From positions 62,001 through 126,000 of the forward strand of contig OZ025724.1 of assembly GCA_964019335.1 (NCBI GenBank): a stretch of DNA of 64,000 nt, written 5' to 3'. Under the pieces are notes generated by a model. The model was not told the DNA's origin and ran no database searches. It was given only the letters and a program-made list of their open reading frames with translations. Numbering within the stretch: position 1 is the stretch's first letter; the number at the start of each line of letters is the position of its first letter. Source of the DNA: Diplonema japonicum. Its lineage: Eukaryota; Protista; Euglenozoa: Diplonemea. A program made the translations under genes and the position numbers. This document shows positions 35,091-58,927 of the stretch, piece by piece.

Positions 35091-35222
35091 TTCTTTTTTG
35101 TTTTTTTTTTGTTTTTTTTTCTCCTCCACTCCCCCCTTTTTTTTTCTTCTTTTTCTTTTTGTTCGTTTTGTATCGTCGTTCGGGCAAAGAAACTACAATG
35201 AATGGCACAGAAAAACAAAAAA

Positions 35223-39203: not shown

Positions 39204-41327
39204 TCAGGAGACGACGCAGCAGCCTGCCACATTTCTTTTCGTGGTGTTCTTTGTCGCAGGTTCCCAGCACCTTGCAGGGTTTTGTTCAGGTAGCTTGGCG
39301 GTCACCACCACCACCTGTGCTTCGCAATGTTCCTGTACCACGGCGTCGTCTCTGTTCCCGGGATCCTCCTCGTTGAGCAGCTGCATCCCTTCAGCGTTAT
39401 TCCGAGCGGCTATTGGGGTCCCTGAAAGAAACCACTTTCCAACAGCTGTGACTTTGCGAAGAGGGCTGAGGTCAACGCTCTCCAAAGAAATGCAACTGTT
39501 GAAAAAACTGTCCCCAACAAACTGCACGTTCTGCAAGGGGCTCATATCCACAGAAGTCAATGATTCACAATTGTCGAGGAAGCTATCGCCGACTGAGGTG
39601 GCGTTGCGAAGAAGGCTGAGATCAACGGCTTCCAAAAGCTTGCAGTTGAAGAGAAAGTAATCGCCGACAGACTCCACACTCTGAGACTCTTGCTTGTTCA
39701 AAGTAACCCACCGTAGCGAGTCGCAGCCACTCATGAAGGAGAAGTTCACTCTCGTCACATTCTTAAGTGAGCTCAGATCAACAGAAGTCAATGTTTCACA
39801 CCTGGATAAAAAACTGTGCCCAAGGGCACTGACATTACAAAGGGGACCGAGGTCAACTGTTTTCAAAGACTTGCAGCTGCTGAGAAATGAACTCCCGATG
39901 GACTGAACCATTTGCAAGGGACTCAAATCCACAAAAGTCAATGATTCACAGCGACTGAGAAAGCCATGGCCGAGTGCGGTCACATTGCGAAGCGGGGTGA
40001 GGTCTACAGTTGTTAGGGAGGTGCATTTATTGAGAAAATTGTCGCCGACATGCACGCTAAGCGAAGCAACGAGGTCCTCTTTCTGAAGGCCCTGTTCATC
40101 AACACAAGAAGTCATTGATTTGCAGTGGTTTTCGCCGCCGATCGTTGTGTTGTTCTGAAGGAAACAGAGATTCACGGACGTGAGAGAGTTGCACTCGTAG
40201 AGAAAATAGTCCCCAACCGACCGAACACCATGGAGGGCTGTCAAGTCCAAGGTGACAACTGATGAGCAAGATCCTAAAAAATAGCTGTCAATAGTCATGA
40301 CATTGAACAGCTGGCTCAAATCCACAAACTTCAACGACACACAAGCATTCATGAAACTGCAACCCACAGCGGATATACGCTCAAGGGGGCTCAGATCCAC
40401 AGATGTCAATGATCCGCATTTTGAGAGAAAGCTGTCGCCGACGGTGGTGACGTTGCGAAGGGGGCTCAGATCAACGGTTTTCAGAGACTTGCAGCTGTGG
40501 AGAAAATAATTCCCGACCGACTGGACGTTCTGCAAGGGGCTGAGATCCACGGAGGCCAATGACTCACAGCCGTCGAGGAAATAATCTCCCGTTGTTTTGA
40601 GGTTTTCGAGGAACCCGAGGTCGATGCTCGAAAGAGATTTGCAGTTGTGGAGAAGACAGCTCCCAACCGACTGAGCGTTTTCAAAAGACGTCACGTTAAC
40701 AGAAGTCAATGATGCACAGCCAGTGAGGAACTTGCTACCGATTGCCGTGAGGTTCCTGAAGACGCAGAATAGGGATGTTAGCGAGCTGCTTTCACTGAGA
40801 AAGCAGTCCCCAATGGACTGAACGCCCCGCATGGCCGCCAGCTCCAAGGTGACGAGTGAGGAGCCAGATAAAAAAGAATCCCCTATAGATGTTGCACCGT
40901 CGCTCAGGGTCCACACCTTGAGGTGACGAAGATTTGAGGGAAATTCGTTTGTGAGGCTACTATCGAGGCAGGTCAGTCCTGCAACATCCACCTCAAGAAG
41001 AAGCTCAGGGTTCTCCTCAAGAAACCCTTTGATCTCCTCTTTTCGCCTCGGGAGCTCCTCGTGACTGACACTAAGTGCTCTGTTACAGGTGCACAAGAGA
41101 AGCTCGCTCCCCTGCCCCATCCCCAGCTGCTGTATCTCCTGTTCCCCACCGCCAGATGTCTCATTATCCAAGACCACACCTTCGAATTGTAAGAGGAACC
41201 ACCCTACCTCCATTGCAGAAACCTCAGCCGCCTTCCTGTACAGGTCCTTCACCCTGTCAAGCCCAGACAGCTCCACCTCGTGCACCACATCCTCGTCGAC
41301 AGTCCTGATCAACACTGCGAGGCTCAT
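39204..41327 (-). CDS. Ubiquitin-like - BspA-type LRR - CaaX protein (paralog 1, 707 aa)
   Basis: N-terminal ~80-aa beta-grasp-like domain, about 20 repeats of ~23 aa (CxSLTSVDLSPLxNVxxxGxxFL), C-terminal GCCVVS. Confidence 0.85.
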   Translation of the reverse strand: MSLAVLIRTVDEDVVHEVELSGLDRVKDLYRKAAEVSAMEVGWFLLQFEGVVLDNETSGGGEQEIQQLGMGQGSELLLCTCNRALSVSHEELPRRKEEIKGFLEENPELLLEVDVAGLTCLDSSLTNEFPSNLRHLKVWTLSDGATSIGDSFLSGSSLVTLELAAMRGVQSIGDCFLSESSSLTSLFCVFRNLTAIGSKFLTGCASLTSVNVTSFENAQSVGSCLLHNCKSLSSIDLGFLENLKTTGDYFLDGCESLASVDLSPLQNVQSVGNYFLHSCKSLKTVDLSPLRNVTTVGDSFLSKCGSLTSVDLSPLERISAVGCSFMNACVSLKFVDLSQLFNVMTIDSYFLGSCSSVVTLDLTALHGVRSVGDYFLYECNSLTSVNLCFLQNNTTIGGENHCKSMTSCVDEQGLQKEDLVASLSVHVGDNFLNKCTSLTTVDLTPLRNVTALGHGFLSRCESLTFVDLSPLQMVQSIGSSFLSSCKSLKTVDLGPLCNVSALGHSFLSRCETLTSVDLSSLKNVTRVNFSFMSGCDSLRWVTLNKQESQSVESVGDYFLFNCKLLEAVDLSLLRNATSVGDSFLDNCESLTSVDMSPLQNVQFVGDSFFNSCISLESVDLSPLRKVTAVGKWFLSGTPIAARNNAEGMQLLNEEDPGNRDDAVVQEHCEAQVVVVTAKLPEQNPARCWEPATKNTTKRNVAGCCVVS

Positions 41328-41426
41328 GTTTATATGGTTCTTTGTCCTTTTTCGAATATTGCAGAGAGTGACATTCTTTTTTGGTTCCCCCCTCCCCCCC
41401 CGGCCGCTGTTATGTGCAAAATAAAA

Positions 41427-41623
41427 ATATATGAGTTAAAGGAGGCCGGTGTTGGCGGCGCCCTGCACAAGAACTGTCTACTTATTTACAGGGGGCGCAC
41501 CGCGACCGAGTTGTAGCTTCTGCTGCGTTCCGCGCCGTGTCCTTACTTGCGTGCAGTGTACAGCTCAACAGCAAACAACACACTCTGATGTTCTTCTTAT
41601 ATTTTCATGTTATCCCCACCACC
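41427..41623 (-). mobile_element. ~200-bp SINE-like element ending in the type-I tail; related copies at ~5149-5295, ~22550-22595 and ~42575-42845
   Basis: Shared blocks tgtagcttctgctgcgttccgcgccgtgtcctta and tcaacagc(g/a)aacaacac..ctgatgt.cttct.tatattt.cat. Confidence 0.65.
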
Positions 41624-43911
41624 TGAAAAGAAAGAATAACTCGAAAAGGGGGAGGGGGGGGTACAGGTAAGAGAAGCGCTCCGGTAACATCATCAAGAAC
41701 GCAGTTAGAAAGAAAGGTACTTTATTAAGAGAAGAAGGAAAGGAAAAGAAAAACTAAGAGAAACAAAAAATATATGAGTTAAAGGAGGCTGGTGTTGGCG
41801 TCCTGTGAAAATCGCCCCACAAAAAAGAAAAGCTAGGAAGGAAAAAAGAACTCGTTAAATCTCACGGGGTGCTCATTATTCAGAAAAAAAGAAACAAGAG
41901 AAGGTGGCTGAAATATTGGGGAAGACCCGACGTCAGGCGTTTTACTATCTGTATAGGGAAATAAATAAATTGGGGGGTCACTCCAACACAAAAAGAGGAA
42001 GGAAAAAAAAACACTGTAAAACGAATAAAGTCGGGCAGAAAACTCCCGGACACCAAAAAAACCCGGACGGGATTTTTCTGGGAAGAATTCTTTTTACATG
42101 GGAGGGTAGAGCTCCTGCTTTTTTTTGTTCCATACCACGTCTGCATGGAAGAGCATTATTCCTTGTGCAGACTCGTATACCCAAGGCACGGGCACGTTGA
42201 GCAGCTAGCTTGTGAGGTTTCTTTTTTTTTTTTTTTTTTGACTTTTTTCTACTTCGTCGATCTTTTTTTCCAAACCGTCCGTTCACCATATTTCCCATTT
42301 TTTTGTGTCGATCTCCCGCCCCTTCATACTGCTCCTTCCAATCGATATTACGGAGTAAGCGCCTAGCACGCCAGGGAACGCACCAAATAGATGTTATCTC
42401 CTCCGAACTGTCTTGTCCGGTCGCAGCTGAAAATTACTTTTTCCTGCCATTTCTTTTTCTCCCTCCTCCTTCTTCGAGAAGGAAAAAGCTAAGAGAAACA
42501 AAAAGATGAGTGAAAAAAATAGGGCTTTGATTGCAACACTAAGTGTCGTTAAGCGTGCAACGAAGCACGAACTACCTACTTGATTACAGTTGGCGCAACT
42601 CGGCCGAGCTGTAGCTTCTGCTGCGTTCCGCGCCGTGTCCTTAATGCGTGCGGTGTGCAACTCAACCCTAGCCGGGCGCCCTGGGTAACCAAGATTCGGC
42701 GCTCATGCGTCTCAGTTTGCCTGTTCGTCACCCTGAGCATATGCAATACGTTCTTCCACTCGGGCGCTACCGGTGATGACCGACGAGGAGGTCAACAGCG
42801 AACAACACATCTGATGTACTTCTTATATTTCCATGCTATCCCAGGGCTTTTGATCTTTTAACGTCAAGGTTAGGGATTTGGGACAAGCACGCCGTCTTAT
42901 GCGTTTCCCTGTCGCAAACTGCCCCGCAGCCAATTTACACGGGAAAAACAGAGGAAATACCCCGGGTCCCACACCCCCCAAAAGGCTGGAGTTTAACAGC
43001 TTCGAAATCTCACTGGGCCACCCAAGAAACGCTTCGGCTCTGGGTAGAAGATCTGTTTCTCTCCTTTGCTACAACCTCATCGAGTCGTCGCAGCCCAAGA
43101 CTTGCCGAGGCCGAGGCCAGGCGCACTGCCAAGGCTGCAAAGGCAGCAAACAAGACGGCCGGACAGGTAGGACGCTGCTTGCCTTTTCCTCGCCCCCTTA
43201 TTTAGTTTTATTGGTCGGGAAAAGTACTCTCCGGACGCTAGTAGGAGCCATTGAATTATATTTTTGCCATTTTTGAGACTCTTGCAACATAAACATACGT
43301 TTTTCCAGACAGAGGGGACAGTGCGTAGGACAGGCTTGGTACCCCCTTAGCGGAAGATAAAATCACCAGATGTTTCGGCGGTCCGGACATTTTATCATCC
43401 GATGATTTTTTGTTTTACAGTAACTCGAACTGCCAAAAGAGGAACTGGCGTGCCGGCGTGGAGGGCAGCGAGAGGACAAACATGTCCTCTGCCCTTTAGC
43501 GCTACACCTCGCACAGTGCACCGCAGTGTCACCGTGCGAGGTGTCGCACTCCTCGAAGACGCAGTCCGCGAGGTGAGGGGCACGAGTGCTTCCCGATGGG
43601 TACTCGAGGTCCGCGTATTGGACCAAATCATCCCAGTCGAGTGCCGTCATATTTTGGTTTGTACGTGCCGGGTAAAAACCTGGAGAAGTTTGTCAACCCG
43701 AAACACGTTGCCAACGTTCCCCTTTTGTTTATACAAGTCAAAGACTCGTTCTTGCAAAAAAGTGTTGACATTCTTTTTTCCGGACGAGGGTACCTGAATG
43801 ATGAATGTGGAGAAGAATGAAAAAAGAAAGATAACAAAGAATGGGGCACAGCACACTGCACAGGGGAGGGTGACCGTAACCCAAAATGCCTTCCTTTGCC
43901 CTGTAAAGTCA

Positions 43912-45291
43912 TCAGCAAACGATGCAACACTCTTTACTTTTACAGGTTGCTTGCTTCACAGGAGGACCCCAGGACCTTGTTGGTATTCTTGGTCGCTCTT
44001 CCTGTTGTGCTGGTTGCTCCTCCTGTTCCTGTTGATGTCCCCGTAGTCTGAGGAATTCCACAACATCTTTCCTGTGTTCCACTGGGGTCCCTGAAAGAAA
44101 ACAGCTGCCGACGGTGGTGACATTGCGTAGGGGGTTGAGATCCACAGAAGTCAATGATTTACAGCCATGGAGAAAATTATCACCGATATTTGTGATGTTC
44201 TGCAAAGGACCCAGATCAACAGTTTTCAAAGAGCTGCAGTTGTAGAGAAAATCTTTGCCAACTAACTGAACGTTCCGCAAGGGGCTCAGATCAACAGAAG
44301 TCAATGATTCACAGCCATTGAGAAAACTGTATTCGAACCGTGTGATGTTCTGGATCAACAGTCGTTAGAGCTTTGCAGTTGAAGAGAAAATAGTCCACAC
44401 TGGATGCAGAAGTACAGGTGTTGCGCAGGGGGCTCAGATCGATAAATCTTAACGAAACACAATAAAACATGAGACCCCAGTGGTCCATACTGGTCACATT
44501 CTGCAAGGGACTCAAATCCACAGAAGTCAATGATTCACAGCCACTGAGAAAATCACTTCCGACGGTGGTGACATTGCCAAAGGGGCTCAGATCAACTGTC
44601 TTCAAAGAGCTGCAATCTCGGAGAAACTCGCGCCCAATGGACTCAACATTCTGCAAAGGACTCAAATCCACAGAAGTCAACGATGTGCAGTTATAGAGAA
44701 AAGAAGAGCCGACGGTGGTGACATTGCCAAAGGGGCTCAGATCAACATTCGTAAGAGACTTGCAATTCTTGAGAAAACAGTCCCCAACGGACTGAAGACC
44801 CTGCAAGGTCGACAGGTCCAAGGTGACGAGTGAGGAGCCAGACAAAAAGGAGTCCCCAATAGAGGTTGCACCGTCGCTCAGGGTCCACACCTTGAGGTGA
44901 CGAAGCTTTGAGGGAAGCTTGCTTGTGAGTCCATCATCAAGACAGTCCAGACCAGTGACATCCACTGAAAGAAGAAGCTCAGGATTCTCCCCAAGATGTC
45001 TTTCAACATCCTCTTTCAGATGCGAGAGGTCCACATGACTGTTTTATAAATACTACACAAGAGAAGCTCGCTCCCCTGCCCCATCCCCAGCTGCTGTATC
45101 TCCTGTTCCCCACCGCCAGATGTCTCATTATCCAAGACCACACCTTCGAATTGTAAGTGGAATCTCCCCACCTCCACTGCAGAAGCCTCAGCCGCCTTCC
45201 TGTACAGGTCCTTCACCCTGTCAAGCCCAGACAGCTCCACCTCGTGCACCACATCCTCGTCGACAGTCCTGATCAACACTGCGAGGCTCAT
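43912..45291 (-). pseudogene. Ubl-LRR-CaaX paralog 2, disrupted
   Basis: Collinear with paralog 3 but with ~10-nt (near 45040) and ~11-nt (near 44352) deletions that cause frameshifts; ends in ECCIVC. Confidence 0.85.
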
Positions 45292-46480
45292 GTTTTTAGC
45301 ACCTTGGTTGGTTTTGTATTTTTAAGGTGTTTGCTACTGCAGACGAAACAATTGTTAAATAGGGGGGGGAGGTTGCAGTATGCTCATCTGGCGAGCTGGC
45401 AACAGGGCGTATGGAGCATTGGTGAACAAGATATCCCGGCGTGACAAACCCCTTTGTTAATCGTGTCGATGCTTAGGGGGCTTGGATGCACCGCAACCGC
45501 GCTTTGAATTGGGCAGTAGGTCGGACAGTGAAGCCGACCCAGGTGTCATGCGCACTCCAGCTTACGGGCGAAAGATAAATGCCCCCCTCCCCTGTGAGGC
45601 CTATGGGTGTGGCCGCCATGTCTGCAACGTTTAGCTCCCTTGAAGCTCACACCAGTGTGCGAGTTGAGCCCATTTTTTGGCACGTTGGCGATGGCTGTGG
45701 TGATCGTTGCAAGAGCGCCTATAGGAAGTATTGGACATAGAGGGAATTTTAAAAGAGAAGGTTTTTCTAGGGAATTCCAGCGATCAATCATGCAAGAACC
45801 AAACCCTTCCGACTGAATACGATTGGTTTGCAGGATACGATTCTTGTTTAATACCTACTTATGTTTCTTTTACATCATTCTTATGCTTTTACATCAGTAC
45901 CACTGCTTTTTTTCATTGAAATGTTCGAACCAAGGAATCAGTCGAAGCGTGAAGCCGCTTTGTCCTTTTGGACTCCCAGTCCACAGTGGGCACCAACCAC
46001 CGCACCGCAGAAATAAATTGAGTTTTTTTTTTTCCCGTTTTCTTTTTTTTTTTTTTTTTTTTTTTTTTGTTTTAACAAAGTTGACCATGTCTCGTGCGAC
46101 ATATCGACAATGGTAGAGGATGCACTTATTGGTGGGAGGCCGTAGGTGCTAGACTTCAGAAGTGCTTTGATCGAGTTCCGCATGAGATTAGATTGCCCTT
46201 TCGTTTGTGGTGTGTACGAACTTGGGGTGTAGGTGATTGGCCACGTAGGGCCTGTTCTACATTTAGTATGGTCCCACCTGAAGAAAAAAAAAAAAGAAAA
46301 AAATAATATTTTCTTGGTTTTTTTTTTTTTTTTTTTTGTTTACAGTAAACTTGCTTTTTAATATTGGTGGTGTGGGTTTTCTTCTACTTCTATAAAATGA
46401 GCAGAGCATCTAGTGGGTTGTTGTACAAACGCTGGCTAAGGATTTCCGCATTTTCTTTTCTGTGTGAACAAAGAATAACA

Positions 46481-47340
46481 ATATATATGAGTTTAAGGAA
46501 GTCTTTGTGAGACGCCCCCTTGTTCTCATCCTCTACCTGCACCTATCCCCTTTCAGCAGCGGTTTTTTTTTTTTTTTTTTTTTTTTTAAATTCCACTTCC
46601 TTTTCGACTTGCTAAGGCCGTGCCCACTAGGTGGGTTGGAAGTGTCTCGAGACGCTCACCCGGTTGCCCGAGTACTCATGACCGTACTGGTGTTCTCTAC
46701 CCACAAGCTTTGCTGGTTGTTTGGCATTTTTTTTTTTTTTTTTGAAGGCTACTGAGGGTGCCGGTCCTCAGCATCTTCTTTTTTTTTTTTTTTTTTTTCA
46801 AATATATTGGGTTTGAGGGATGTCGAGTGTTTCGCCCTGGCCGCAGGGCATTTCAGGAGGAGGTGTTCGAGCGTTCTCTCTGTTGCGGGTCCGCATCTTT
46901 CGCAAATGCGTTGCTTGAAGTCTTTCTTCAACAGCTCGTGATGCCCGGACTTCAGCTGATTGATCATCACCTCTTCTTTTCTGCTGAGCCCTTCCATCTT
47001 TTTGGGTGCTTCTGTCTTCCCTGCCCACTTGTAGTATGTCCTCTCCTTCTTTAAACCAGCAATTATGTCTTTTCTCTGTCTGTTGCTGGTGGTTCTTCGC
47101 TGCGCCCATGCTGATCTTTTGGGTTGCCTCTTCTTCCCTGCCTTTTTCCGCCAGCTCATCTGCTTTCTCGTTCCCTTCTAGTCCGCAGTGGCCTGGGACG
47201 TAGCAGCATGTGAGGTAGTTCCCATTTTTCGTCAGCGCGTGTATGTCTCGCCACACTCCAGCCACCATGTCCTCCTGCTGCCTTGCTGGGCCCTGTTTCA
47301 GTTTCAGCAAGGTTTCTCCTCCTAACAATATCCGGATCAA
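46481..47340 (-). mobile_element. 3' fragment of an RNase H-encoding (ingi/I-like) non-LTR retrotransposon ending in the type-II tail
   Basis: RNase H C-terminus YVPGHCGLEGNEKADELA, then CERC...TLEHLLLKC, then the tail at 46481-46562. Confidence 0.8.
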
Positions 47341-48023
47341 AAGTCAACACTTTTCTTTTTGACAAGTTCGAAGATCTTTTGTTTTGATTATTTGAGCAAA
47401 AAAAGGGCAGCATGCAACCATAGGAAGATGACATATATGGTGTACCTGTTGCCGTTCTTTCAATTGCGATGCTTGTTTTGCCATGAGGGTGGCAGGCTTT
47501 GCAACCGGCTGCCCCCGGGAAGTGTACTGGCCTGAGGCCTTGTTCTCCAACACACCTTCTACAATCAATCTCTGACTCCAGTTACCTGCCAGAAAGTTAT
47601 CAGCAGCGGTGTTGCACGCTCTTCAGCACCACGTCACAATGGGGACAAATGCCTTCCCATGCTACCCCCTTCTGAACCATCCTGCTCCAGAAACAGGGTA
47701 CAGTGAGCGAACATATCGAGGGAATAAACTTCGTTACTTTCCTGTCTGGGCTTTCGAACTAAAGAATTGAAAAACCTTAAATACAAACAGGTGAGTGGGG
47801 TACAGTAACATAAAAAGGCAAAAAAGAGAACAAGAACAAAAAAAAAGGCAAACATGAAAAAAGAAATGGGGCTTTGGTTGCAACACTATTTTGCGTTAAG
47901 TGTGCGGCGTGGTGGTGGTGGGTCTATCTTGTGTTGTTAAAAAAAAAGTAATAGTATCGTTTTGAAACTTGTCGTTTTGGTTTCGCTCGAGCGAGGAAAG
48001 AGGTGCGGGAAAGGGGAAAAAAA

Positions 48024-48092
48024 ATATATATGAGTTAAAAGAAGTCTTTGTGAGACGCCCCCTTGTTCTCATCTTCTACCTACACCTATCCC
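48024..48092 (-). repeat. Retroposon 3'-tail motif type II (also 46481-46562, 52738-52807, 56222-56291; degenerate 29207-29260)
   Basis: Minus strand ...GGTAG(A/T)(A/G)GATGAGAACAAGGGGGCGTCTCACAAAGACTTC..TAACTCATATAT. Confidence 0.85.
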
Positions 48093-48444
48093 AAAAATGC
48101 TTAAAAAGCTTAATAATAAAGTAGATTTGCTCGGCACAAAGGGATGACAAGTTTCTAGTTATCATTTCTTTTTGCCCAAATTGCAGTTTGAACTAAAATC
48201 TATGAGAAAAGCTTGCTCCTCCTGAACGAAAGCTCAAGCTGTTTCTTAACGCGTGGAGGAAGGAATGAGTGCTTTCATGCTACAAGGGCATGGAGGTCCA
48301 AAGACGAAACTAGACGTCAGGAGGGAAATCTTTTTATTTACAATATTCTATCTGGTTGACGACCCGCCGTGTTCCTCGATTCTCACCTATTTTCCCATGA
48401 TCAAGCAAGTAATGTGAAGAGGTTACATGTTGCCATTTCTCGAA

Positions 48445-50109
48445 CTAAGCCTGTTGGGATCTGAACCACTTCCATGACGAGCCGACACAGAGTGGACGGT
48501 AAGTCTTCTGCTTTTCTGATTTTCTTAGACTATACGGTTTGCTGACTACAGAACTATCATTGGTTTCCTTCCGAAGAAGCGCGACAACATCAGCCCTGCC
48601 TGCTCGTGATGCCGACACGAGTGGTGTCATTCCTGATGGTGTCGTGATGTTGACATCAGCCCCATGATCCAGCAAGGTCCTGCATACTGCCATGTGTCCT
48701 AATGATGCCGCAACGTGAAGGGGTGACACCGAGCGCCCCATCCGCTTCAACAGAACATCAGGACACACGCCAAGAGACAAAAGAATCTCAAGTTCATCAG
48801 GAAAGTTGCTGAAGGAGGCCCGAAACATGACAGCCAGCTTGTCCTCCTCGCTCAGTCCCTCCATCGCCTTTCGTGTTGCCTCGTTGCCCCTGATGTACCC
48901 ACCACTCCCGTACCGAAGCATTCCTGACACTTTGCTGTGCCGTTGATAATATGAAACAGTTGCCGTAAGCCCCTTCACAGCCCCTTTCGTCAGAAGAAGT
49001 GACACAACATCAGCCCTGCCTGTTCGTGATGCCGACATGAGTGGTGTCCATCCTGATGGTATTCTGATGTTGACATCAGCCCCATGATCCAGCAAGGTCT
49101 TACAAACCGCTACGTGTCCTGCTGATGCCGCAATGTGAAGGGTTGACACATGACTATTTCCCGACTTGAATAGCTTGTTGGGATCTGAACCACTTTTGAT
49201 GAGGAGTCCACACAAAGTGGAATCCCCCACTCGTGCTGCCGACGGTAAGTCTTCTGCTTTTCTGATTTTCTTACACCCTGGTTTGTTGACCACATTGGTT
49301 CCCTTGGCACCCTTTTGAAGAAGAAGCGCGACAACATCAGCCCTGCCTGCTCGTGATGCCGACATGAGTGGTGTCATTCCTGATGGTGTCTTGATGTTGA
49401 CATCAGCCCCATGATCCAGCAAGGTCCTGCATGCCGCCATGTGTCCTGATGATGCCGCAACGTGAAGGGGTGACACCGAGTGCCCCATCCGCTTCCACAG
49501 AACATCAGGACACACACCAAGAGACAAAAGAATCTCAAGTTCATCAGGAAAGTTGCTGGAGGAGGCCCGAAACGTGACAGCCAGCTTATCCTCCTCGCTC
49601 AGTCCCTCCATCGCTTTCAGTGTTGCCTCGTTGCCCCTGATGTACCCACCACTCCCGTACCGAAGCATTCCTGACACCTCGCTGTGCCGTTGATAACATG
49701 AAACAGTTGCCCCAAGCCCCTTCACAGCCCCTTTCGTCAGAAGAAGTGACACAACATCAGCCCTGCCTGCTTCCGATGCCGACATGAGTGGTGTCCTTCC
49801 TCCTCCTGCTGATGGTGTTCTGATGTTGACATCAGCCCCATGATCAAGTAAGGTTTTGCAAGTTGCTAGTCTTCCGCCTGAAGCCGCAAGATGAAGGGGT
49901 GAGATGGTTCCACTTCCCCACTTAACCAACGAATTAGGATCAGCACCCTGCAGGATGAGATCCCCTATGCCATGGTTGGCCGATACCGCACGGTGAAGAA
50001 CACGCGAGTCAGGTCCACACAGGAGACTTCTGTTTCCCTCCACTTGTTCGACCATCGCCCTGCCCCACATCCCCTTCGCTGTCCCACGCAACCACCTTCC
50101 GAGCCGCAT
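48445..50109 (-). CDS. Ankyrin-repeat protein built from a duplicated 747-bp unit; degenerate 3' end
   Basis: SPLHxAA...G....C..LLDHGADVN and TPLMSAS..G..DVV.LLL repeats; unit offset 48721 vs 49468. The last ~30 codons are an out-of-frame copy of the linker. Confidence 0.85.
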   Translation of the reverse strand: MRLGRWLRGTAKGMWGRAMVEQVEGNRSLLCGPDSRVLHRAVSANHGIGDLILQGADPNSLVKWGSGTISPLHLAASGGRLATCKTLLDHGADVNIRTPSAGGGRTPLMSASEAGRADVVSLLLTKGAVKGLGATVSCYQRHSEVSGMLRYGSGGYIRGNEATLKAMEGLSEEDKLAVTFRASSSNFPDELEILLSLGVCPDVLWKRMGHSVSPLHVAASSGHMAACRTLLDHGADVNIKTPSGMTPLMSASRAGRADVVALLLQKGAKGTNVVNKPGCKKIRKAEDLPSAARVGDSTLCGLLIKSGSDPNKLFKSGNSHVSTLHIAASAGHVAVCKTLLDHGADVNIRIPSGWTPLMSASRTGRADVVSLLLTKGAVKGLTATVSYYQRHSKVSGMLRYGSGGYIRGNEATRKAMEGLSEEDKLAVMFRASFSNFPDELEILLSLGVCPDVLLKRMGRSVSPLHVAASLGHMAVCRTLLDHGADVNITTPSGMTPLVSASRAGRADVVALLRKETNDSSVVSKPYSLRKSEKQKTYRPLCVGSSWKWFRSQQA

Positions 50110-50300
50110 GTGTGTAATACCTACTGAGTTGCGGTGTGATCAAAGACAATAGTGAATGCAGATTAAAGCGTACTACGCCGATGCGCATAAGCGTTTCATT
50201 TTGTTTCAAACTTTCTTGTGTATCGAGAGATGGTCAAAGATACACAGTAAGACCTGCCAAAGAAACACAACTTAGTTGTATGCATCACTGGTTATTGCCC

Positions 50301-50938
50301 TGCACGTTCTTCAGCACCACGTCACAATGGGGACAAATGCCTTCCCGTCCTGTCCATGCTACCTTAACCGACCGTCGGTTTGCTCCGTCGCACCACTGCC
50401 CGCGCTTCGCGCTCTTGGACCGCTATTCGACGAGCAGAGATGGTTCTAGCGCACGATCTGTGTTGGTCTTCACCAGCTTGGTGCCGTGGCCAAGGTTCAC
50501 GTTTGGGCATACGCCTCTCTTTCGCTTCTTCCTGTAGTGGCTCGCGAGGGGCGGGGCCGGTGCTGGGGCTGAGTGCGGGGCCAGAGCTCGTCGCCGTCGT
50601 GGGTGGTGAGGCATGCCAGTTCCAGCTCCTCCGTCCGTGGCGCAGGTTCTGTCTTTACCGATGGTGGGGTCGAGATCGGGGCCTCGATGTCGTCGCCGGT
50701 CAGGTCTATGACCTCCTTCACGTTTCCCTGCACCTCATCGGTTCCCTGTGGCACAGGTCCCGCCTCCTTGTGGGGGAGGTTCCGTTGTAGGTGTTGACTC
50801 CGCGGGTGGTGGCTCCAACATGTACATGTACCCCACTCTGCAGAAGCCTCAGCCTTCGGGTACCCTGTCAAGCCCAGACAGCTCCACCTCGTGCACCATA
50901 TTCTCGTCGACGGTCCTGATCAACACTGCGAGGCTCAT
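50301..50938 (-). pseudogene. Chimeric pseudogene: Ubl N-terminus of the LRR family joined to an unrelated VIDLTGDD / Cys-rich region
   Basis: MSLAVLIRTVDENMVHEVELSGLDRV from the ATG at 50938, then frameshifted EVIDLTGDD and EGICPHCDVVLK. Confidence 0.6.
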
Positions 50939-53498
50939 GGTTTCTTTTGGTTTATTACTTTTGTTGATTCTTTTTTTTGTATTTTTAGGTTTTTACAGAC
51001 GAAATAAATAAATTGGGGGGGGGGGGGGGGGGGGGGCAGGGTCACTGGGCGGGACTGAACAAGAAAAGCGATAAGAGGGAGAGAGGGAGGGGGTTTGCCT
51101 TCCTCCAATACAGAAAAGAAGAAAGAAAAAAAAAGAATAAAAAAAGAAAAAAGGAAAAATGATGAAGTGTCAGCCACAGGTTTGCATAACGTGTGGTTGC
51201 ATGTCACACTTTTGATGAGTGTCACATAGATAAAAACTGGCAAATAGAGAGGAAAATAAAGGGACTGAATGGAATTGGGTTAGCTTGGGCGGGGTGCCAT
51301 CAATCGGGGGTTTGAAAAAAGAAATTTATTTAAAGAAAATGAAATTCATTCTTTTTCTTGTTGTTGATGCGTGGCGAACGACTAAGAACAGGGGAAGAAA
51401 AACAACGAGGAAAGCTGGGGTATTTCTTTTTATTTTTTTATTTTTTTTTTTTTATATATAACTCCAGTCAGATTTTTAAGTGGGTATTTCACTTTATTTT
51501 CACGGCAGATTTCAGGCTTGTTTTAGGAGGAAAACAGGGGCAGGAATGAAAATTACTTTATGAGTGAATATAAAGTACTAGCCCTATTTTCACTGCACAG
51601 CAAGGGTTTGGGGTCGCAAACACGAAAAGAAATCACCCAAGTGGTTACCACATAGGCCCCTTGTTTTGGAAACCCCGGTTCGAATCTGGGAATCTCACTT
51701 TTTACGTCACTCAAGGATCTGGGCCTCTCACCAGAAGGTGGCAAGCCAGCAGCGTCACCGCGTAGTGGGGCGACCTCAGCAACCCAGGCAGCAGCCCCAC
51801 AGGTCCAGACCGAGTACCCGCACCACACAGGATAAGCCTTGGCAATCAATATCAACGTCAACCATAAGCACCGGTAAAATTTGTAACTTGTAACTTTGTA
51901 ATACCCCACACTTTCAAATCCAACTAACGTTAAATATAACAGATTTAGTGAAAATAGATCCGATTTTCATTTGTGGTGGCCTGTTCAACTCGCTTCGCTC
52001 GTGAAGTCATATACCCACTCGTTAAACCACTGCCACCGCGCGTGAAAATCATACGATCTTTTTTTTCACTAAATAAATAGTTATTTCTTTGTTTGTACAA
52101 CATAAAAAAAAAAAAAAAAACATCTTGCCAGCTTTCCCCTTTTTTTGTTTAGACAAGTCAAAGACTCGTTCTGTCGCAAGAAGAAGGTGGACGTTGAAAG
52201 AGAGAAATAAAAAAAAGAAGAATGTCTTTAGTTGCCTCTAAAAATTATTGGAAAAAAAAAAAAGAAAAAGGAACCTGTATATGCGACAGGATAAATGCAA
52301 AATGAACAAAATGAAACGAAACTTCTTTGGGGGTAAAAGAGGGGAGTGGCGGGGGGAGAAAAAAGAGCTGCCGCTTTTGCTGTATATGCTAAGTATTGTG
52401 CAGAAAGGTTAAAAGCCTTAACAAAGCTGCCTCGATTCCCTTCCTTTTTTTCCTCTTTTCTTTTTGTTTTAATTAAAGTATAACTGCTTTCATAAATGGA
52501 ATTAGGCATGCTTCCGGCCTAGCGATGCTAAAAAAAAAAAACTTCCAGCCGTAGTAGGGACTGTAAAGATAAGAATTTCGCAAGTTTTCTGCCCTCCGCC
52601 TTTTCAGTCAGAGGGTGGGAGGAAAACAAATAGGGTAAGGTCATTTCGCCATTTTTGTCCGTTTCGTCAATTCTTTTTGGTTTTACAGTGACAATGTATA
52701 GAAATGAAAGTAAACGAAAAAAAAAAAAAAAAAAAATTATGAGTTAAGGGGGGTCGTTGTGAGACGCCCCCCTTGTTCTCATCCACTGCACCTACCCCTT
52801 TCAGCAGGTTTTTCCAGCTTGGACACTTTTCTACGTCTTCAGAAGCCCATGCAGTCTCCTGTCGTCCGCTTGATCCCCCGCCTTCCCCCTTATAGGGTTT
52901 TTCTAGTCACGTTCTCGAAACAAAAAAGAATAAGAAAAAAAAGAAGAAAAACAAAGAATTTTTTTTTTTCTTTTTTGCTGTTGTGTTGTTACATTATATA
53001 TGTGCGATGGCGAAAGTCGGGTTTTTTTTTTTTTTTTTTTCAAATCACACATAAAAGATCAGAAGCAACTGCCGCACATGGCCAGCCCTTCATCAACAGC
53101 AACAGAGAACAGTGTCCGCACGTCTTGCGTATCGAAACCAGTGAGCGAGGCAACCTTCTCCCGCACTGCCGTCATCGGAAACACAACCTGCAGACCTATG
53201 TACTGCTGTTCCATTTTTTCCCCCCTTTCTTCTTTTTTTTTATTTATAAATAAAAGGTGTTTGGCTGTGGTTGTTTAGATATTTTACCCTACCCCTATTT
53301 GTACCTCCCCACAAGAACAGAAAAAAAATAAAATAAAAAAAGAAAGAGGGAGTGGGGGGGGGGGGGGGGGGGGGGTGCTCACTATTCAAAGAAGAAAATT
53401 CAAACACTAATCTGTCAACCCTTCCACAATTTGTTAGAGTCATGCTAGGGCGGCGGTTCGACTCGAGAACAAAAAAAAAAAAAAAAAAAAAGGCCTTG

Positions 53499-54493
53499 TC
53501 ATGCCGTCTTCAGTTTTGCAGCCTTATCCCATTTCGCCTTAGCTATTGCAATGCGTGTCAGGTTGGCTTTCGAGTCGATTATGAACAGAAAAACAGCGCA
53601 AAACCCAGAGAAGCAAGCTTCATAAGAAACAGGATGGACAAGGATCAAACGAAAAGGGATGTACAGAAAACAAGCACTCTGCCACGTCCATGAGAACAGT
53701 GCCGATGTAAATATGAGAACAGACTGAAACAACGGATGTTTCGGGGTAGCGTGGAACAAGAGAAGGAATGCATAGTTGAGCGAAGCAATGGAGGCACCGA
53801 GAAGTAGGGACATAGCACAGGCTTGCATAAGCGGGCTGAGGTTTCCTCCCCCGAATGCTGGATCCGTACTTAAAATGCAAAACACCATCACCAGGAAGTG
53901 GTGGAGGTAATCGTCCCAAAACAAGGTGGGGAGATATGCCAGTTCCCACACCATGAGCGCAGCAAGCCAAACCCTTACTAAATAGAAGGATCTGACCGCA
54001 CGGACGTCGGGCGAAGAAATGTCACATTCTGGTCCCAACAGAGAGCCTGTAAGGGCCTGAAACTCCAGCCCGTTGTCCCAGTCGAGAAAATTCCACACCT
54101 CCCACATGCCAACACAGCAGACACCTCTTAGCAACAGGGCTACGACCATCATCACAATTTTTCGTTTTTTAGAATAGGCTTGCATTTTGTCGCCATTTCC
54201 CAAGTCGTTCCATCCTGGGAACACATTTGGAAGCACTGTACTGTGCAGTGCAATGGTGGCAAAGCACACATTAAGCGAAGCGGTGAGAAACACGCTTAGA
54301 CCACTTCCTGCACAACACGCTGGGTTTTTTTTTTTTTTTTTTTTTTTATTCACAATATGGTCATACAGTCCGAGCTCAGGGCATGGCCTTGTATCGGCTC
54401 TGGTATGTACTTGATATCTATAAACATCGCTGTCATGGGCAGCACAACACCTGAGAGGAGGACAACTGCCGTGCCACACAGCAGGCCAAGCAT
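53499..54493 (-). CDS. Multi-pass membrane protein, TLC-domain-like; join(54493..54367,54319..53499)
   Basis: A 47-nt GTATGA...(A)n CCCAG intron joins a hydrophobic first exon in frame; several TMs and a YLHH motif. Confidence 0.7.
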
Positions 54494-54560
54494 TTTTCTT
54501 TCTCGCTTTCTCCCCTGACTGTGAAGAATTGAATGGTCGATTTGCAACATTTTGAAACTT

Positions 54561-54592
<32 letters not shown>

Positions 54593-54595
<3 letters not shown>

Positions 54596-56215
54596 TCTGT
54601 TAATACTCCCCTTCTGGAGCATTGCTTTCATCCCGATTGAGGCCGTGAGCGTCTTGCGGAGTCGTGTGATGCGGTCTCGCTTGTAGTCGGCTTTCAATTC
54701 CATTAGCTTGTCGTGCGTGGAGCGGGTGGCGAAAATAGTCCTGGAGATACCAATAGCTGCCTTTCCTCCAATGGCGATGAGGGACTTCACTCTTTTTCTC
54801 TCGTCCGCTGGGAAGGGGCGTCGCTTCTTCCGTGCCATGCATGCTGTGTTTATCTTTACGATGAGAGCTTTGATTCTGCGCGCCTATCTTCCAGCAGGCC
54901 TCCCAAAGACTTTCCGGTCGTCCATTCAAGAAGTCAATGGCCAGTTCCACCGCCGACACCTCCGAGGTGGTGTCCTTCTCCACCCAGCGCAGTTGTGACA
55001 ACCATTGTAGCGGGTTCAGGTACTGGGACAGGACCCCGCTCACTCCTTCGAGCTCGCCAGCTATCGGAACGAGGCATCTCTTACCTACCACATTTCGAAT
55101 CCACGGTAGCGGCTGTGTGTTGACATCCTCCTTCTGCATGAGCTCTACGTCTCGTTTCTCAACCACCACGGCTAAGTATCGTTGCAGCTTCTCTAGGTAC
55201 GCAAAGTCATGTCCTCTCGGCAGAATCGCGTGCAATTCCAGACACAGGGGCCATCCTGTCCTGTTGCGCAGTGGTTCCAAGCCGTCCTGTGCTAGCTCTT
55301 CCTGTGCGCAGGCGCACTCGTAGAGTTGATGGCGGAGTAGGGTTACCGTGTCCGGGTATGGTGATTCACACAGGTCGCACCTGAACCCTTGTGTGCGTGG
55401 TACTGTCGTTGTTGGGACTTGGTTTATGCTCTCTTCGACTTCTTCGGTGCCGTCACCTTCTGGCCAGGGGGACGCTTCTTTGGTTCGTTCCTGCATGCGG
55501 GCTAAGGTAGGGGACCCCTCCGGTGATAACCCGTCTCAGGCAGTAGGACATGAGCGGGTCCTTGGCTGTCTTCCATAGTTGGTTGGTTTTGGGATCCGCT
55601 CCCGCCTCCATCCCTCTCACTGTGTTCCTCTCGTTCGCCAGCGACCGCGTTCGGCCCAGGGTTTGTTCCCACAGTCTAGCAATTGCGCCCAGCTCCATCC
55701 TATATAGGGGAGCCACAGACCAGGTTGCCTACTGGTCCCATCGGGGTGGACCCCGTGCCGCACCCCGCAGCGATCCGCATGCATCTCTGTCGTAGTCGTT
55801 CGTCGTCGAGCGCTCCGGACACTGCCTTCAGGGAGTGGTATATCACATAGGAGAGGGGATCCTTGGTGTGCCCCTTCAAGGGACTGTGTTCACTGCGGTA
55901 GGAGAGCGTCCACGGTGGTGAGGGCCCCATAGGTTGCACGTTACCCTTGTCGACAATTTCTTGAGCGTCTCGTCACATGGGGGGGAGAACGGTCCGCTGT
56001 AGAGGCATGACGGAAGAACCGTCGTTGATGACCGACAGCGGGCACCCCTGGAGGATACCGTTTGTGGCCTCAAACGTGTCACCAACTCCTATGGGGTACT
56101 TGAACCTCCTCGTGATCTGGGAGTACATCCCTTGGAGTGCTCTTCCTATAGATTCGACCCAGGGCGCTCATGAGGTCAAGGGACAGCTGTTGTGGTACCA
56201 GGTCGAAGCACTTTC
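54593..56215 (-). mobile_element. Family A LINE copy, 5'-truncated with internal deletions
   Basis: High similarity to 59118-61122; RT remnant NGILQGCPLS is joined directly to TTVLPSCLY; ends at KGSINR followed by poly-T. Confidence 0.9.
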
Positions 56216-56589
56216 TAAAGAATATATGAGTTAAAAGAAGTCTTTGTGAGACGCCCCCTTGTTCTCATCTTCTACCTGCCCCTTTCAGCGGTTTCTCCTC
56301 CTTTGGTGGTCTTGCCGGCCTTCTCCCCAGCCTGGCCGCTTTTTCTCTTCGTTCTCTTGCGCATTGTCCTTTCAACGCCTCTAGGTCATGCTTGGTCTTC
56401 GGTGATGCAAATATCGCCCTCCTGTATGAAACGGCTGCCCAACGAAACCAACAGAGCCTGCCCCGTCCCACGACGGTCCGTCTTGCCCCCGAAGAACGCA
56501 ACCATGACCTGTTCGTGCTTCACCACCAAGTCTCGACATAGGACCAACCTCAAATCCACAAACCTGGCGGTTCTTGCCCCGTGAAGTCA

Positions 56590-58155
56590 TCAGCAAACGA
56601 TGCAACACTCTTTACTTTTACAGGTTGCTTGCTTCACAGGAGGACCCCAGGACCTTGTTGGTATTCTTGGTCGCTCTTCCTGTTGTGCTGGCTCCTCCTC
56701 CTGTTGTGCTGGTTGCTCCTCCTGTTCCTGTTGATGTCCCCGTAGTCTGAGGAATTCCACAACATCTTTCCTGTGTTCCACTGGGGTCCCTGAAAGAAAA
56801 CAGCTGCCGACAGTGGTGACATTGCGAAGGGGGTTGAGATCTACAGTTCTCAAAGAGCTGCAGTTCTTGAGAAAGCTGTCACCAAGATGCTGAACGTGCA
56901 AGGGGATCAGATCAACAGAAGTCAATGATTCACAGCCATGGAGAAAACGATCACCTATATTTGTGATGTTCTGCAAAGGACCCAGATCAACAGAAGTCAA
57001 TGATTCACAGCTACGGAGAAAATCACGTCCGACGGTGGTGACATTGCCAAAGGGGCTCAGATCAACTGTCTTCAAAGAGCTGCAATCTTGGAGAAAACTG
57101 TCATCTACTTTTGTGATGTTCTGAAGGGGACTCAGATCAACAGTCGTTAGAGCTTTGCAGTTGAAGAGAAAATGGAGAATTGTAGATGCAGAAGTAAAGG
57201 TGTTGCGCAGGGGGCTCAGATCGATAGATCTTAAAGAAACACCATAAAACATGAAACCCAAGTGGTCCATACTGGTCACATTCTGCAAGGGACTCAAATC
57301 CACAGAAGTCAATGATACACAGCCACAGAGAAACCAAGAGCCGACGGTGGTGACATTGCCAAAGGGGCTCAGATCAACTGTCTTCAAAGAGCTGCAACCA
57401 TAGAGAAACCAGCCCCCAATGGACTCAACATTCTGCAAAGGACTCAAATCCACAGAAGTCAATGATGTGCAGTTATAGAGAAAAGAGCCGACGGTGGTGA
57501 CACTGCCAAAGGGGCTCAGATCTACAAAAGTCAATGATTCACAGTCTCTGAGAAACATATGTCCGACAGTTGTGAGGTTCTGGAGGAAACCTAGATCCAC
57601 AGTAGTTAGGGATTTGCACCTGCAGAGGAAAGAGTCCCCAACAGACTGAAGACCCTGCAAGGCCGACAGGTCCAAGGTGACGAGTGAGGAGCCAGACAAA
57701 AAGGAGTCCCCAATAGAGGTTGCACCGTCGCTCAGGGTCCACACCTTGAGGTGACGAAGCTTTGAGGGAAGCTTGCTTGTGAGTCCATCATCAAGACAGT
57801 CCAGACCAGTGACATCCACCACAAGAAGAAGCTCAGGATTCTCCTCAAGATGTCTTTCAACATCCTCTTTCAAATGCGAGAGGTCCACATGACTGACATC
57901 AATTGTTTTATAAATACTGAACAAGAGAAGCTTGCTCCCCTGCCCCATCCCCAGCTGCTGTATCTCCTGTTCCCCACCGCCAGATGTCTCATTATCCAAG
58001 ACCACCCCTTCGAATTGTAAGTGGAACCTCCCCACCTCCACCGCAGAAACCTCAGCCGCCTTCCTGTACAAGTCCTTCACCCTGTCAAGCCCAGACAGCT
58101 CCACCTCGTGCACCACATCCTCGTCGACAGTCCTGATCAACACTGCGAGGCTCAT
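56590..58155 (-). CDS. Ubiquitin-like - BspA-type LRR - CaaX protein (paralog 3, intact)
   Basis: Start MSLAVLIRT at 58155; ~14 LRRs; Q/E-rich linker; C-terminal KECCIVC. Confidence 0.88.
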   Translation of the reverse strand: MSLAVLIRTVDEDVVHEVELSGLDRVKDLYRKAAEVSAVEVGRFHLQFEGVVLDNETSGGGEQEIQQLGMGQGSKLLLFSIYKTIDVSHVDLSHLKEDVERHLEENPELLLVVDVTGLDCLDDGLTSKLPSKLRHLKVWTLSDGATSIGDSFLSGSSLVTLDLSALQGLQSVGDSFLCRCKSLTTVDLGFLQNLTTVGHMFLRDCESLTFVDLSPFGSVTTVGSFLYNCTSLTSVDLSPLQNVESIGGWFLYGCSSLKTVDLSPFGNVTTVGSWFLCGCVSLTSVDLSPLQNVTSMDHLGFMFYGVSLRSIDLSPLRNTFTSASTILHFLFNCKALTTVDLSPLQNITKVDDSFLQDCSSLKTVDLSPFGNVTTVGRDFLRSCESLTSVDLGPLQNITNIGDRFLHGCESLTSVDLIPLHVQHLGDSFLKNCSSLRTVDLNPLRNVTTVGSCFLSGTPVEHRKDVVEFLRLRGHQQEQEEQPAQQEEEPAQQEERPRIPTRSWGPPVKQATCKSKECCIVC

Positions 58156-58299
58156 GTTTATATGGTTCTTTGTCCTTTTTCGAATATTGCAGAGAGTGAC
58201 ATGAAACAAACGTGCGGCTTTCTTTTTCGGTTTCCCCCCCCCCCCCCCCCCGGCCGCTGTTATGTGCAAAAATAAAAATATGAGCTCGTCCGAAAAAAA

Positions 58300-58927
58300 A
58301 TGTCAACACTTTTTTGGGCACCTCCGAAAATTTCTTGTTTTGATTATTTGAGCAAAAAAAGGGCAGCTGAAATGATTGTAGGTTAGAATAAAGAAGCAGC
58401 ATGCAACCATAGGAAGATGACATATATGGTGTACCTGTTGCCGTTCTTTCAATTGCGATGCTTGTTTTGCCGTGAGGGTGGCAGGCTTTGCAACCGGCTG
58501 CCCCCGGGAAGCGAAAAACAGAGGTCAGAAAAACGACGAAAAATGTTTAAAATGCAGTTTAAAAGCTTGAAATGCAGCACCTAGGGTGCATAAAAGTGGT
58601 GAACACACACCTTTGTGACCCCTGGGTACAACCCAGGGTCGGGTTATTGTTAAAAGTACTTAGCGAAAAATATATGGCGTTGCATAGCCCCCCCAAAACC
58701 AGGTTTTTTAGCCCTATTTTTTGCTTTTTCGAGGGGTCCTAAGGGAATTGGCCTAAAAGGCCCATTTTCCTGAAACCCAATTCTTAACACTTGCCTGCTC
58801 AACATCGGTATCTTTGGGGCCAAATATGCATTCTCTACCCATCTGCTGAGGTTTGTCATTTTTTTTCTTAAGTAAACTCATGACAAATTAAAAGTTGAGA
58901 TGTTTGCTTTTAAAGGGCCCTTAGGGG
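58300..58927. repeat. Composite repeat with piggyBac-related pieces; 58335-58510 is duplicated at 47379-47521
   Basis: Shares aaaaaagggcagc/atgcaaccataggaag with 35399-35428 and aaaagtacttagcgaaaaa with 37014-37032; TIR-like gggcccttagggg at 58915-58927. Confidence 0.5.

Follow-up and report, generated by a model that had tools for sequence, protein, structure and literature searches.

Positively selected repeat positions in a family of Ubl-LRR-CaaX proteins of Diplonema japonicum, a candidate intracellular binding repertoire

The marine protist Diplonema japonicum encodes a family of proteins that join a ubiquitin-like (Ubl) head, an array of leucine-rich repeats (LRRs) and a C-terminal CaaX box. 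Four positions of the 25-residue repeat unit (20, 21, 24 and 25) have a ratio of nonsynonymous to synonymous divergence (dN/dS) above 1, and the framework around them is under purifying selection. Three genes of the family, paralogs 1 to 3 (par1, par2 and par3), lie in the stretch of DNA analysed here, a window of 64,000 nt on contig C77 (positions 62001-126000); the analysed sample comprised about 45 loci of a larger family. On balance, and by a small step past even chances, we read the family as a diversifying, intracellular, membrane-tethered binding repertoire that evolves by birth and death. A first-pass annotation of the window had drawn attention to three paralogs with near-identical N-termini and CCxxx ends: the first 75 nt are indeed identical across par1, par2 and par3, and the ends read CCVVS and CCIVC.

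Diversifying positions in a conserved repeat framework

The repeat unit measures 25 aa or 75 nt, with a two-unit super-period of 150 nt (unit parse; TRF likewise returns a period of 75 nt), and not the 69 nt first assigned to it. Its consensus, C1 x2 S L x x V D L9 x P L x N V x x V G19 x20 x21 F22 L23 x24 x25, agrees with that of the TpLRR class (LxxLxLxxxLxxIgxxAFxx(C/N)xx; PMC2946307), and its length falls within the 23-25 residues of that class. The BspA/TpLRR solenoid proposed for the proteins was borne out by profile and structure searches alike. PF13306 (LRR_5) is matched with 150.8 bits by par1 (expect value, E, 2.4e-44), with 109.1 bits by par3 and with 69.4 and 37.8 bits by pieces of par2, at a cut-off of 27.7 bits. 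A family profile finds the LRR_5 structures 4fs7 (E 1.1e-26) and 4gt6 (E 2.7e-25) and the TpLRR structure 6mlx (E 4.7e-10), and Foldseek, queried with an AlphaFold (AF2) model of par3, returns 4fs7, a Bacteroides LRR_5 protein, as its best match (E 1e-8, template modelling score (TM-score) 0.55 on the target). The first unit (..IGDSFLSG..) and the last (..VGSCFLSG..) are conserved across paralogues.

Within the unit, entropy reaches 2.5-3.4 bits at positions 2, 20, 21, 24 and 25 and is at most 1 bit at the core positions. These five are the x positions of the motif G-x-x-F-L-x-x-C-x (unit positions 19-25, 1 and 2), around which the first-pass annotation had seen changes cluster on a near-invariant framework. 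Counting confirms the impression: between par2 and par3, the residue differs in 16 of 35 variable-position codons versus 18 of 200 framework codons (odds ratio 8.5, p=7e-7). Nei-Gojobori counts on the aligned paralog genes then separate the kinds of change. For par3 versus par2, the variable codons carry 29.8 nonsynonymous (Nd) and 3.2 synonymous differences (Sd), with a proportion of nonsynonymous differences (pN) of 0.35; the framework carries 26.5 and 27.5, with a pN of 0.059 and a proportion of synonymous differences (pS) of 0.183. In the pair L010-L012, pN at the variable codons is 0.283 against a pS of 0.035 (framework pS 0.04), and in L009-L012 it is 0.34 at the four codons, with a framework pS of 0.10. 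Across gene pairs, omega at the variable codons is 2.5-9.8 in the closest and near 1 in the more distant ones (not calculable for L006-L009, where Sd=0), and framework omega is 0.25-0.8. The gene-level estimates are inflated to some degree: the LRR region has about threefold the pS of the flanks (0.03-0.06 outside the LRRs among par2, par3 and L005), which indicates that some of the aligned units are non-orthologous.

Independent unit pairs were therefore analysed separately. Thirty-three disjoint, non-identical pairs were picked on 14 core codons only, leaving the other 11 codons free of ascertainment. In these pairs, pN is 0.42, 0.41, 0.41 and 0.36 at positions 20, 21, 24 and 25, 0.26 at position 2 and at most 0.17 elsewhere, at a pS of 0.17-0.23; the non-consensus positions 5, 6, 10, 13 and 16 stay below pS. 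A Fisher test sets the four codons apart from the other free codons in their balance of nonsynonymous and synonymous differences (odds ratio 3.3, p=6e-4). The positions singled out in the first-pass annotation thus stand above background in dN/dS, with a framework omega of about 0.25-0.3. Local hypermutation was considered as the main cause and rejected. The variable codons show no clear rise in synonymous divergence (0.235 vs 0.166 at the other free codons), and this similarity favours selection over hypermutation. In a sister subfamily described below, moreover, codons 20, 21 and 25 hardly vary at their third positions; codon 24 does vary at this site.

Where do these residues lie on the protein? 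In the par3 model (predicted local distance difference test (pLDDT) 84; predicted TM-score (pTM) 0.69), the strand of the concave sheet occupies unit positions 6-8, in agreement with its expected place at positions 3-5 of the conserved LRR segment (PMC2946307), and a second short strand occupies positions 17-18. The concave positions T/S6, V7 and D8 are conserved, and the variable positions come after the second strand, flanking the buried F22, L23 and C1. From the periodicity of the solenoid we infer that the variable residues stack as one continuous stripe along the rod. This stripe would run between the second strand and the next repeat, off the canonical concave LRR sheet. W, Y, H, R, D, S, G and C are common at the variable positions, a composition suggestive of exposed binding residues.

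The ubiquitin-like head and the lipid-anchor tail

The N-terminus had been called ubiquitin-like from the outset, and we accept it as a beta-grasp Ubl domain on the basis of profile, model topology and fold search. Ubiquitin and ISG15 are recovered with a family profile, over residues 3-75 (single domains at E 3e-8 to 1e-4), and PF00240 is matched in 15 of 16 members (best E 1.4e-6). In the par3 model, the head (pLDDT about 80) runs strand-strand-helix-strand-strand-3_10-strand and leads on through a further strand and a helix into the LRR N-cap, with strands at residues 3-9, 15-20, 44-48 and 75-80 and helices at 26-37 and 65-68. Nearly all top rows of an exhaustive VIA structure search are Ubl domains (Z 4.2-4.9; root-mean-square deviation 2.1-3.2 A over 58-67 residues), among them Ddi2, Dsk2, Rad23, ISG15, OASL, UBL4A, BAG6, midnolin, NUB1 and parkin. 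A homolog search with residues 1-145 alone gave no match, though close relatives sit in the searched database, and we give this outcome no weight. The domain has no GG end and the chain continues (...GSKLLLFSIYKT...), which makes it an integral Ubl domain and not a conjugatable modifier. In the alignment to ubiquitin, L8 is replaced by an acidic residue, I44 by Q, H, R or Y (V in the sister subfamily) and K48 by E, and no UBA domain was matched by Pfam in the family genes of the window.

After the last unit follow a helix, a variable number of 21-nt repeats of the EQPAQQE type, a basic stretch and the Cys-CaaX end; the spacer is flexible, acidic and Gln-containing, and of variable length. The CaaX boxes are CVVS in par1 and CIVC in par2 and par3, with CIIS, CVIS, CTAS, CAVS, CVLC, CFVC and CTVC among paralogues. 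All intact members sampled from the window subfamily have S, C or A as the final X, and a relative in another genome ends in PCCSVS (CSVS). We take S, C or A at this position to mark a CaaX box of the farnesyltransferase type. The enzymes for prenylation are encoded in the genome, as profile matches to three loci of the PF00432 prenyltransferase beta family (309, 275 and 236 bits) and one ICMT locus (82.6 bits) indicate. The CaaX end is kept across paralogs and species.

Other members of the family carry other ends. The sister subfamily lacks a CaaX box and ends in LNLKRK(KRK)VGV, which by inspection resembles a classical nuclear localisation signal (NLS), and the D. japonicum transcript P0001 has a hydrophobic, tail-anchor-like C-terminal stretch. 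The family proteins of the window have neither a signal peptide nor a transmembrane segment. This and the alternative C-terminal tags of the relatives, tail-anchor-like and NLS-like, fit an intracellular location.

Gene copies, relatives and genomic setting

All long open reading frames (ORFs) of the window lie on the minus strand, with ORFs of long interspersed nuclear elements (LINEs) interspersed, and all family genes can be read as single ORFs, with no intron or spliced model required (Table 1). By the unit parse, the array of par1 holds about 19 units and one non-repeat insert. Nucleotide alignment to par3 locates two frameshifts in par2, a 10-nt deletion between 45042 and 45041, just after the Ubl, and an 11-nt deletion between 44353 and 44352; its ORF pieces span 45016-45291, 44309-45034 and 43912-44358. 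Two whole repeat units and 21 nt of spacer present in par3 are missing from par2, which otherwise aligns full length. Repeat number thus varies, as first proposed, by the presence or absence of whole 75-nt units between paralogs. The relic of a fourth member was found by genome search (match C77:112855-112938) and translation.

Table 1. Family genes and other features of the window, with positions counted from its first nucleotide
Feature	Position	Strand	Description
par1	39204..41327	-	intact Ubl-LRR-CaaX ORF, 707 aa, ends NVAGCCVVS
par1, Ubl	~41088-41327
par1, LRR_5 array	~39420-40892
par1, CaaX codons	39207-39218		CVVS
par2	43912..45291	-	pseudogene; Ubl, LRR array and CCIVC end still present
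Relic of fourth member	50861..50938	-	first 26 Ubl codons (MSLAVLIRTVDENMVHEVELSGLDRV), homology lost thereafter
par3	56590..58155	-	intact, 521 aa, ATG at 58155, ends CCIVC
par3, Ubl	57916-58155		aa 1-80
par3, helix and N-cap			aa 81-145
par3, LRR units	56788-57720		13 units, aa 146-456
par3, helix and EQPAQQE spacer			aa 457-517
par3, 21-nt spacer repeat	56674-56726	-	from tandem-repeat search
par3, CaaX codons	56593-56604		CIVC
Ankyrin-repeat gene	48445..50109	-	Pfam Ank_2 E 1e-61; between par2 and par3
ART / NACHT-like / pentapeptide ORF, then WD40 ORF	29989..35129	-	the 'NLR' of the first-pass annotation; Pfam ART E 3e-7
Non-LTR (long terminal repeat) retroelement	59118..63323	-	adjoins par3; endonuclease/unknown part, reverse transcriptase, zinc-finger-like tail, by eye from motifs

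How does the diversity arise? Recombination between paralogs is clear at the level of the sequences. The 55-nt 5' flank of par3 is of the par1 type and its coding sequence of the par2/L005 type, and which paralogue matches best changes from one part of the gene to the next, units at other positions being among the matches. Exchange of this kind has in part homogenised the repeat framework. Homology between the paralogs starts about 55-90 nt upstream of the ATG and ends about 15 nt past the stop codon. There are two types of 5' flank, each preceded by a G-run or a C-run (regions 56400-56590, 58156-58300, 41328-41420 and 45292-45400). Of the two exchange processes that the first-pass annotation had put up for examination, shuffling and gene conversion, recombination between paralogs was thus found in the flank-coding mosaic of par3, and cassette shuffling was not found. 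The 130 units of the window subfamily hold 113 distinct cassettes of four codons (12 nt), which are shared only between units with near-identical frameworks, that is recent duplicates, the conserved last unit excepted. We therefore rejected cassette shuffling as the source of the differences: in the sampled set, where unsampled donors are possible, no 12-nt cassette recurs on a different framework except in the last unit. With no imported cassettes visible, point substitutions retained by selection would be the simplest source. The gain and loss of whole units, together with the frameshifts and stops in many relatives, fit birth-and-death evolution.

The sister subfamily (L016-L019, L022, L025 and L028, on contigs C66, C85, C21, C95 and C101) begins MTVFVKTGGGVHDVEV and carries 10-22 units of 75 nt that are identical even at third codon positions, save one TCC/TCT site in codon 17. 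Its units differ mainly at codons 20, 21, 24, 25 and 2, besides a few two-state framework sites (8, 11 and 12), and 36 cassettes are heavily reused in 109 units. Such an array amounts to a coding minisatellite in which certain codons are hypervariable. Minisatellites of this kind, hypervariable at the contact codons, are known from the PRDM9 and KRAB zinc-finger arrays and from the repeat-variable di-residues of transcription activator-like effectors (TALEs). The sister subfamily resembles PRDM9 and TALE arrays in its near-identical 75-nt units, five variable codons, 10-22 copies and reused cassettes. The window subfamily differs from them in the synonymous differences between its units and in cassettes that are almost all unique, and nothing in the family points to a nucleic-acid target or to a code of one unit per letter.

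The family reaches well beyond the window. A genome search returned at least 150 Ubl-like and more than 183 LRR matches, and the transcript EP01064_Diplonema_japonicum_P039525 (P0003) agrees residue for residue, over 430 positions, with a family ORF on contig C93. The locus L029 (C107:216037-219720) fuses a protein-kinase-like N-terminus to 23 clean units of the same LRR repeat, which shows that the LRR module is also joined to heads other than Ubl. Outside D. japonicum, 45 of the best 120 external matches combine Ubl and LRR. Relatives on megabase-scale ENA contigs include both a CaaX class (..PCCSVS) and a basic-tail class (..KRSRDESPEQSQKRRRHAQ), which indicates that the architecture and its alternative address tags are older than D. 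japonicum. Three ENA proteins (P0053, P0100 and P0118) have a Cys/His-rich N-terminus whose B-box-like motif scores about 19 bits, under the cut-off; then come a long intervening stretch, a Ubl and LRR_5 repeats, an architecture that is loosely TRIM-like.

The surroundings of the three genes had been taken for a defence island with a nucleotide-binding LRR receptor (NLR) and an ankyrin gene, an idea that found no support. The NACHT match of the supposed NLR reaches 23.8 bits, under the cut-off of 26.7; the NACHT-like region has only two relatives in the genome, neither of them adjacent to Ubl-LRR genes and one sharing a contig with such genes at a distance of about 58 kb; and no link of the ankyrin gene to the family was shown. 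Further neighbours include LINE fragments, a cyclase, a kinase and a UFM1 ligase. The cyclase (7680-13043) is a large receptor-type adenylate/guanylate cyclase with PA and laminin-G-like domains (PF00211, PF13385 and PF02225), and the homologue of E3 UFM1-protein ligase 1 (756-3086; PF09743, E 1.5e-61), a gene of housekeeping type, lies at the edge of the variable region. The 3' part of the retroelement next to par3 has a second copy at 54600-55496, and an RNase H-like fragment lies at 46749-47340. The ORFs 54600-55496 and 59118-60083 are paralogous and share a C2H2-like motif (FRCDLCESP..LLRHQLYEC); the latter, the only ORF of the retroelement set scanned against Pfam, gave no match there. 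It stands directly downstream of a LINE reverse-transcriptase ORF (60068-61663), and both ORFs are probably LINE 3' modules, with par3 between them. The region looks like a retroelement-rich zone of family expansion (C77 12-150 kb).

Readings of the family and its significance

What might such a family do? In the reading that we favour, the variable stripe would be a rapidly diversifying binding surface. The CaaX box, together with the Cys and the basic residues beside it, would receive farnesyl and palmitoyl groups and so keep the protein at the cytosolic face of a membrane; in sister subfamilies, an NLS-like or tail-anchor-like end takes its place. All members would dock through the invariant Ubl head onto one common partner, most likely a component of the ubiquitin-proteasome, segregase or autophagy machinery, and diverse bound targets would in this way feed one output. 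That the Ubl couples bound ligands to the ubiquitin, proteasome or autophagy machinery, as the first-pass annotation also imagined, would follow by pure inference.

Several observations weigh against a binding repertoire of this kind. One of the three copies in the window, par2, is a pseudogene, and several relatives elsewhere in the genome carry stops; no transcripts of the three window genes were among the database matches, the best match to par3 being 43% identical. The raised pS of the LRR region, with its inflation of gene-level estimates, belongs here as well, as does the fact that surface exposure of the variable residues is deduced from periodicity and composition. On the side of the head, par3 alone scores 19 bits on PF00240, below the gathering threshold of 25.4; the model of the isolated Ubl is of low confidence (pLDDT 63), and Foldseek found no match for it. 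The missing equivalents of L8, I44 and K48 mean, in addition, that docking to proteasome receptors in the manner of Rad23 and Dsk2 is not supported. The UBL-UBA shuttles (Rad23, Dsk2, Ddi1/Ddi2) are nevertheless instructive: they likewise place an N-terminal, integral Ubl before a target-binding module, and the UBLs of Ddi2, Dsk2 and Rad23 match the head structurally. The family differs from them in having no UBA domain and no equivalents of the L8/I44 patch.

A bolder version of the same idea, to which we attach only a small probability, would see in the hundreds of Ubl-LRR proteins an innate 'recognise-and-dispose' system and thus a new eukaryotic class of immune or quality-control receptors. 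Here the LRR face, hypervariable and non-canonical, would capture foreign or aberrant proteins, be they effectors of Holosporales endosymbionts, viral proteins or prey proteins, at membranes via CaaX or tail anchor and in the nucleus via an NLS. The fused Ubl would deliver the captive to the proteasome, p97 or autophagy receptors without prior ubiquitination, and bacteria might counter with F-box versions of the same LRR module.

The bacterial side of this picture leads to an alternative that can be combined with the binding repertoire and that we likewise consider unlikely, namely that the LRR module has moved between diplonemids and Holosporales, with the host family serving mainly as decoys for, or antagonists of, LRR or F-box-LRR effectors that the bacteria secrete, or with the bacterial proteins mimicking the host family. 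Proteins from Holosporales metagenome-assembled genomes (MAGs; P0005, P0013, P0025, P0066, P0098 and P0109) are among the best external matches to par3. They start with signal-peptide-like segments and share the family's 25-aa LRR unit, with high entropy at the same positions. To the D. japonicum N-cap, one of them, P0098, is a closer match (36.7 bits, E 1.8e-11) than are the Ubl-LRR proteins of the ENA contigs, and P0013 and P0098 carry an F-box, at threshold. D. japonicum itself harbours two Holosporaceae endosymbionts, whose genomes place LRR proteins next to genes of the type VI secretion system (10.1101/719211). A recognition module fused to a plug for the ubiquitin system in both the host (Ubl) and the bacteria (F-box) fits module exchange, possibly mimicry. 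Set against this, the Holosporales proteins come from MAGs and not from demonstrated diplonemid symbionts, repeats make LRR trees unreliable, and no endosymbiotic gene transfer is reported in symbiont-bearing diplonemids in a preprint that does not mention LRR proteins (10.64898/2026.01.29.702485). Bacterial F-box-LRR effectors offer a parallel in that an LRR recognition module is joined with a small domain through which the protein engages the ubiquitin system of the host, as in the GALA proteins of Ralstonia (PMC2244805) and in the Holosporales proteins with F-box and LRR_5, which use the family's 25-aa unit. These are secreted bacterial proteins, GALA being of another LRR class, whereas the window genes are eukaryotic and have a Ubl instead of the F-box.

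Somewhat less probable again is that the x positions are merely unconstrained and that gene conversion keeps the rest of the unit uniform, with neither adaptive diversification nor diverse ligands. The same positions are non-consensus across the TpLRR class and of high entropy in the bacterial homologues too, recombination between paralogs is evident and pseudogenes are common, all of which such a combination of relaxed constraint and concerted evolution would account for. Neutral sites, however, predict a pN close to pS, and the observed excess is about twofold in the unit pairs and up to about eightfold in the closest gene pairs. Moreover, the other non-consensus positions do not share in it, and W, Y, H, R, D, S and G are frequent among the variable residues, which is the pattern of binding sites.

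We give lower odds still to BspA-type surface adhesins that would bind prey, bacteria or substrate on the outer face of the plasma membrane. The precedent is found in Entamoeba histolytica and Trichomonas vaginalis, whose BspA-like families are of the same LRR class and form large, divergent families of protist paralogues. Several Entamoeba members end in a CAAX box, and one such protein has been detected at the surface (PMC2843621; PMC5349171). These families are discussed as surface proteins, and they differ in lacking a ubiquitin-like head and, in T. vaginalis, the CAAX box as well; a literature search found no paper joining BspA-like repeats to a ubiquitin-like domain, with position-specific dN/dS not included in the search. 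The D. japonicum proteins have no signal peptide or transmembrane segment and start with a cytosolic-type ubiquitin fold, prenylation acts on the cytosolic face, and the sister ends, NLS-like (KRKKRKVGV) or tail-anchor-like, would leave the LRR in the cytosol or nucleus. Equally improbable are membrane signalling scaffolds with an RBD/RA-like head and an LRR like that of SHOC2 or yeast adenylate cyclase, acting in small-GTPase complexes and with a diversity that tracks an expanded GTPase/kinase set: the structural matches include SHOC2 and the Roco LRR, CaaX anchors are typical of proteins in the Ras pathway and the kinase fusion L029 bears the same repeat, but the head matches PF00240, ubiquitin and ISG15 with no RA or RBD family appearing in the profile searches, the SHOC2 matches reach a TM-score of only about 0.15, and dN/dS above 1 in more than 150 copies would be unusual for housekeeping scaffolds.

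We would finally like to place the favoured reading, a diversifying intracellular binding repertoire, beside the recognition systems it most resembles. The variable lymphocyte receptors (VLRs) of lampreys and the LRRs of plant and animal NLRs likewise combine a conserved framework with positively selected positions at the period of the unit, and occur as clustered paralogues with pseudogenes. In VLRs and NLRs, the variable residues sit on the concave beta-sheet (the x of LxxLxLxx), whereas in D. japonicum they follow the second strand and the concave T/S6 and D8 are conserved; Toll-like receptors, too, differ from the family, whose stripe would lie off the concave face. A linked signalling domain of the kind that serves as a criterion for such receptors is lacking in the family genes of the window, where Pfam finds neither NB-ARC/NACHT nor TIR.

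A literature search found no paper describing the Ubl-LRR-CaaX family. Few marine heterotrophic protists are as abundant and diverse as the diplonemids, and how they sense and handle other organisms is almost uncharted. A constant Ubl head, a positively selected stripe and interchangeable address tags together have the logic of a recognition repertoire, built from parts that have not been seen together before. The family may thus provide an entry point into cell-autonomous immunity or symbiont control in protists, in a host of two cytoplasmic bacterial endosymbionts, and would be an instance from nature of a consensus repeat scaffold whose binding surface is randomised.

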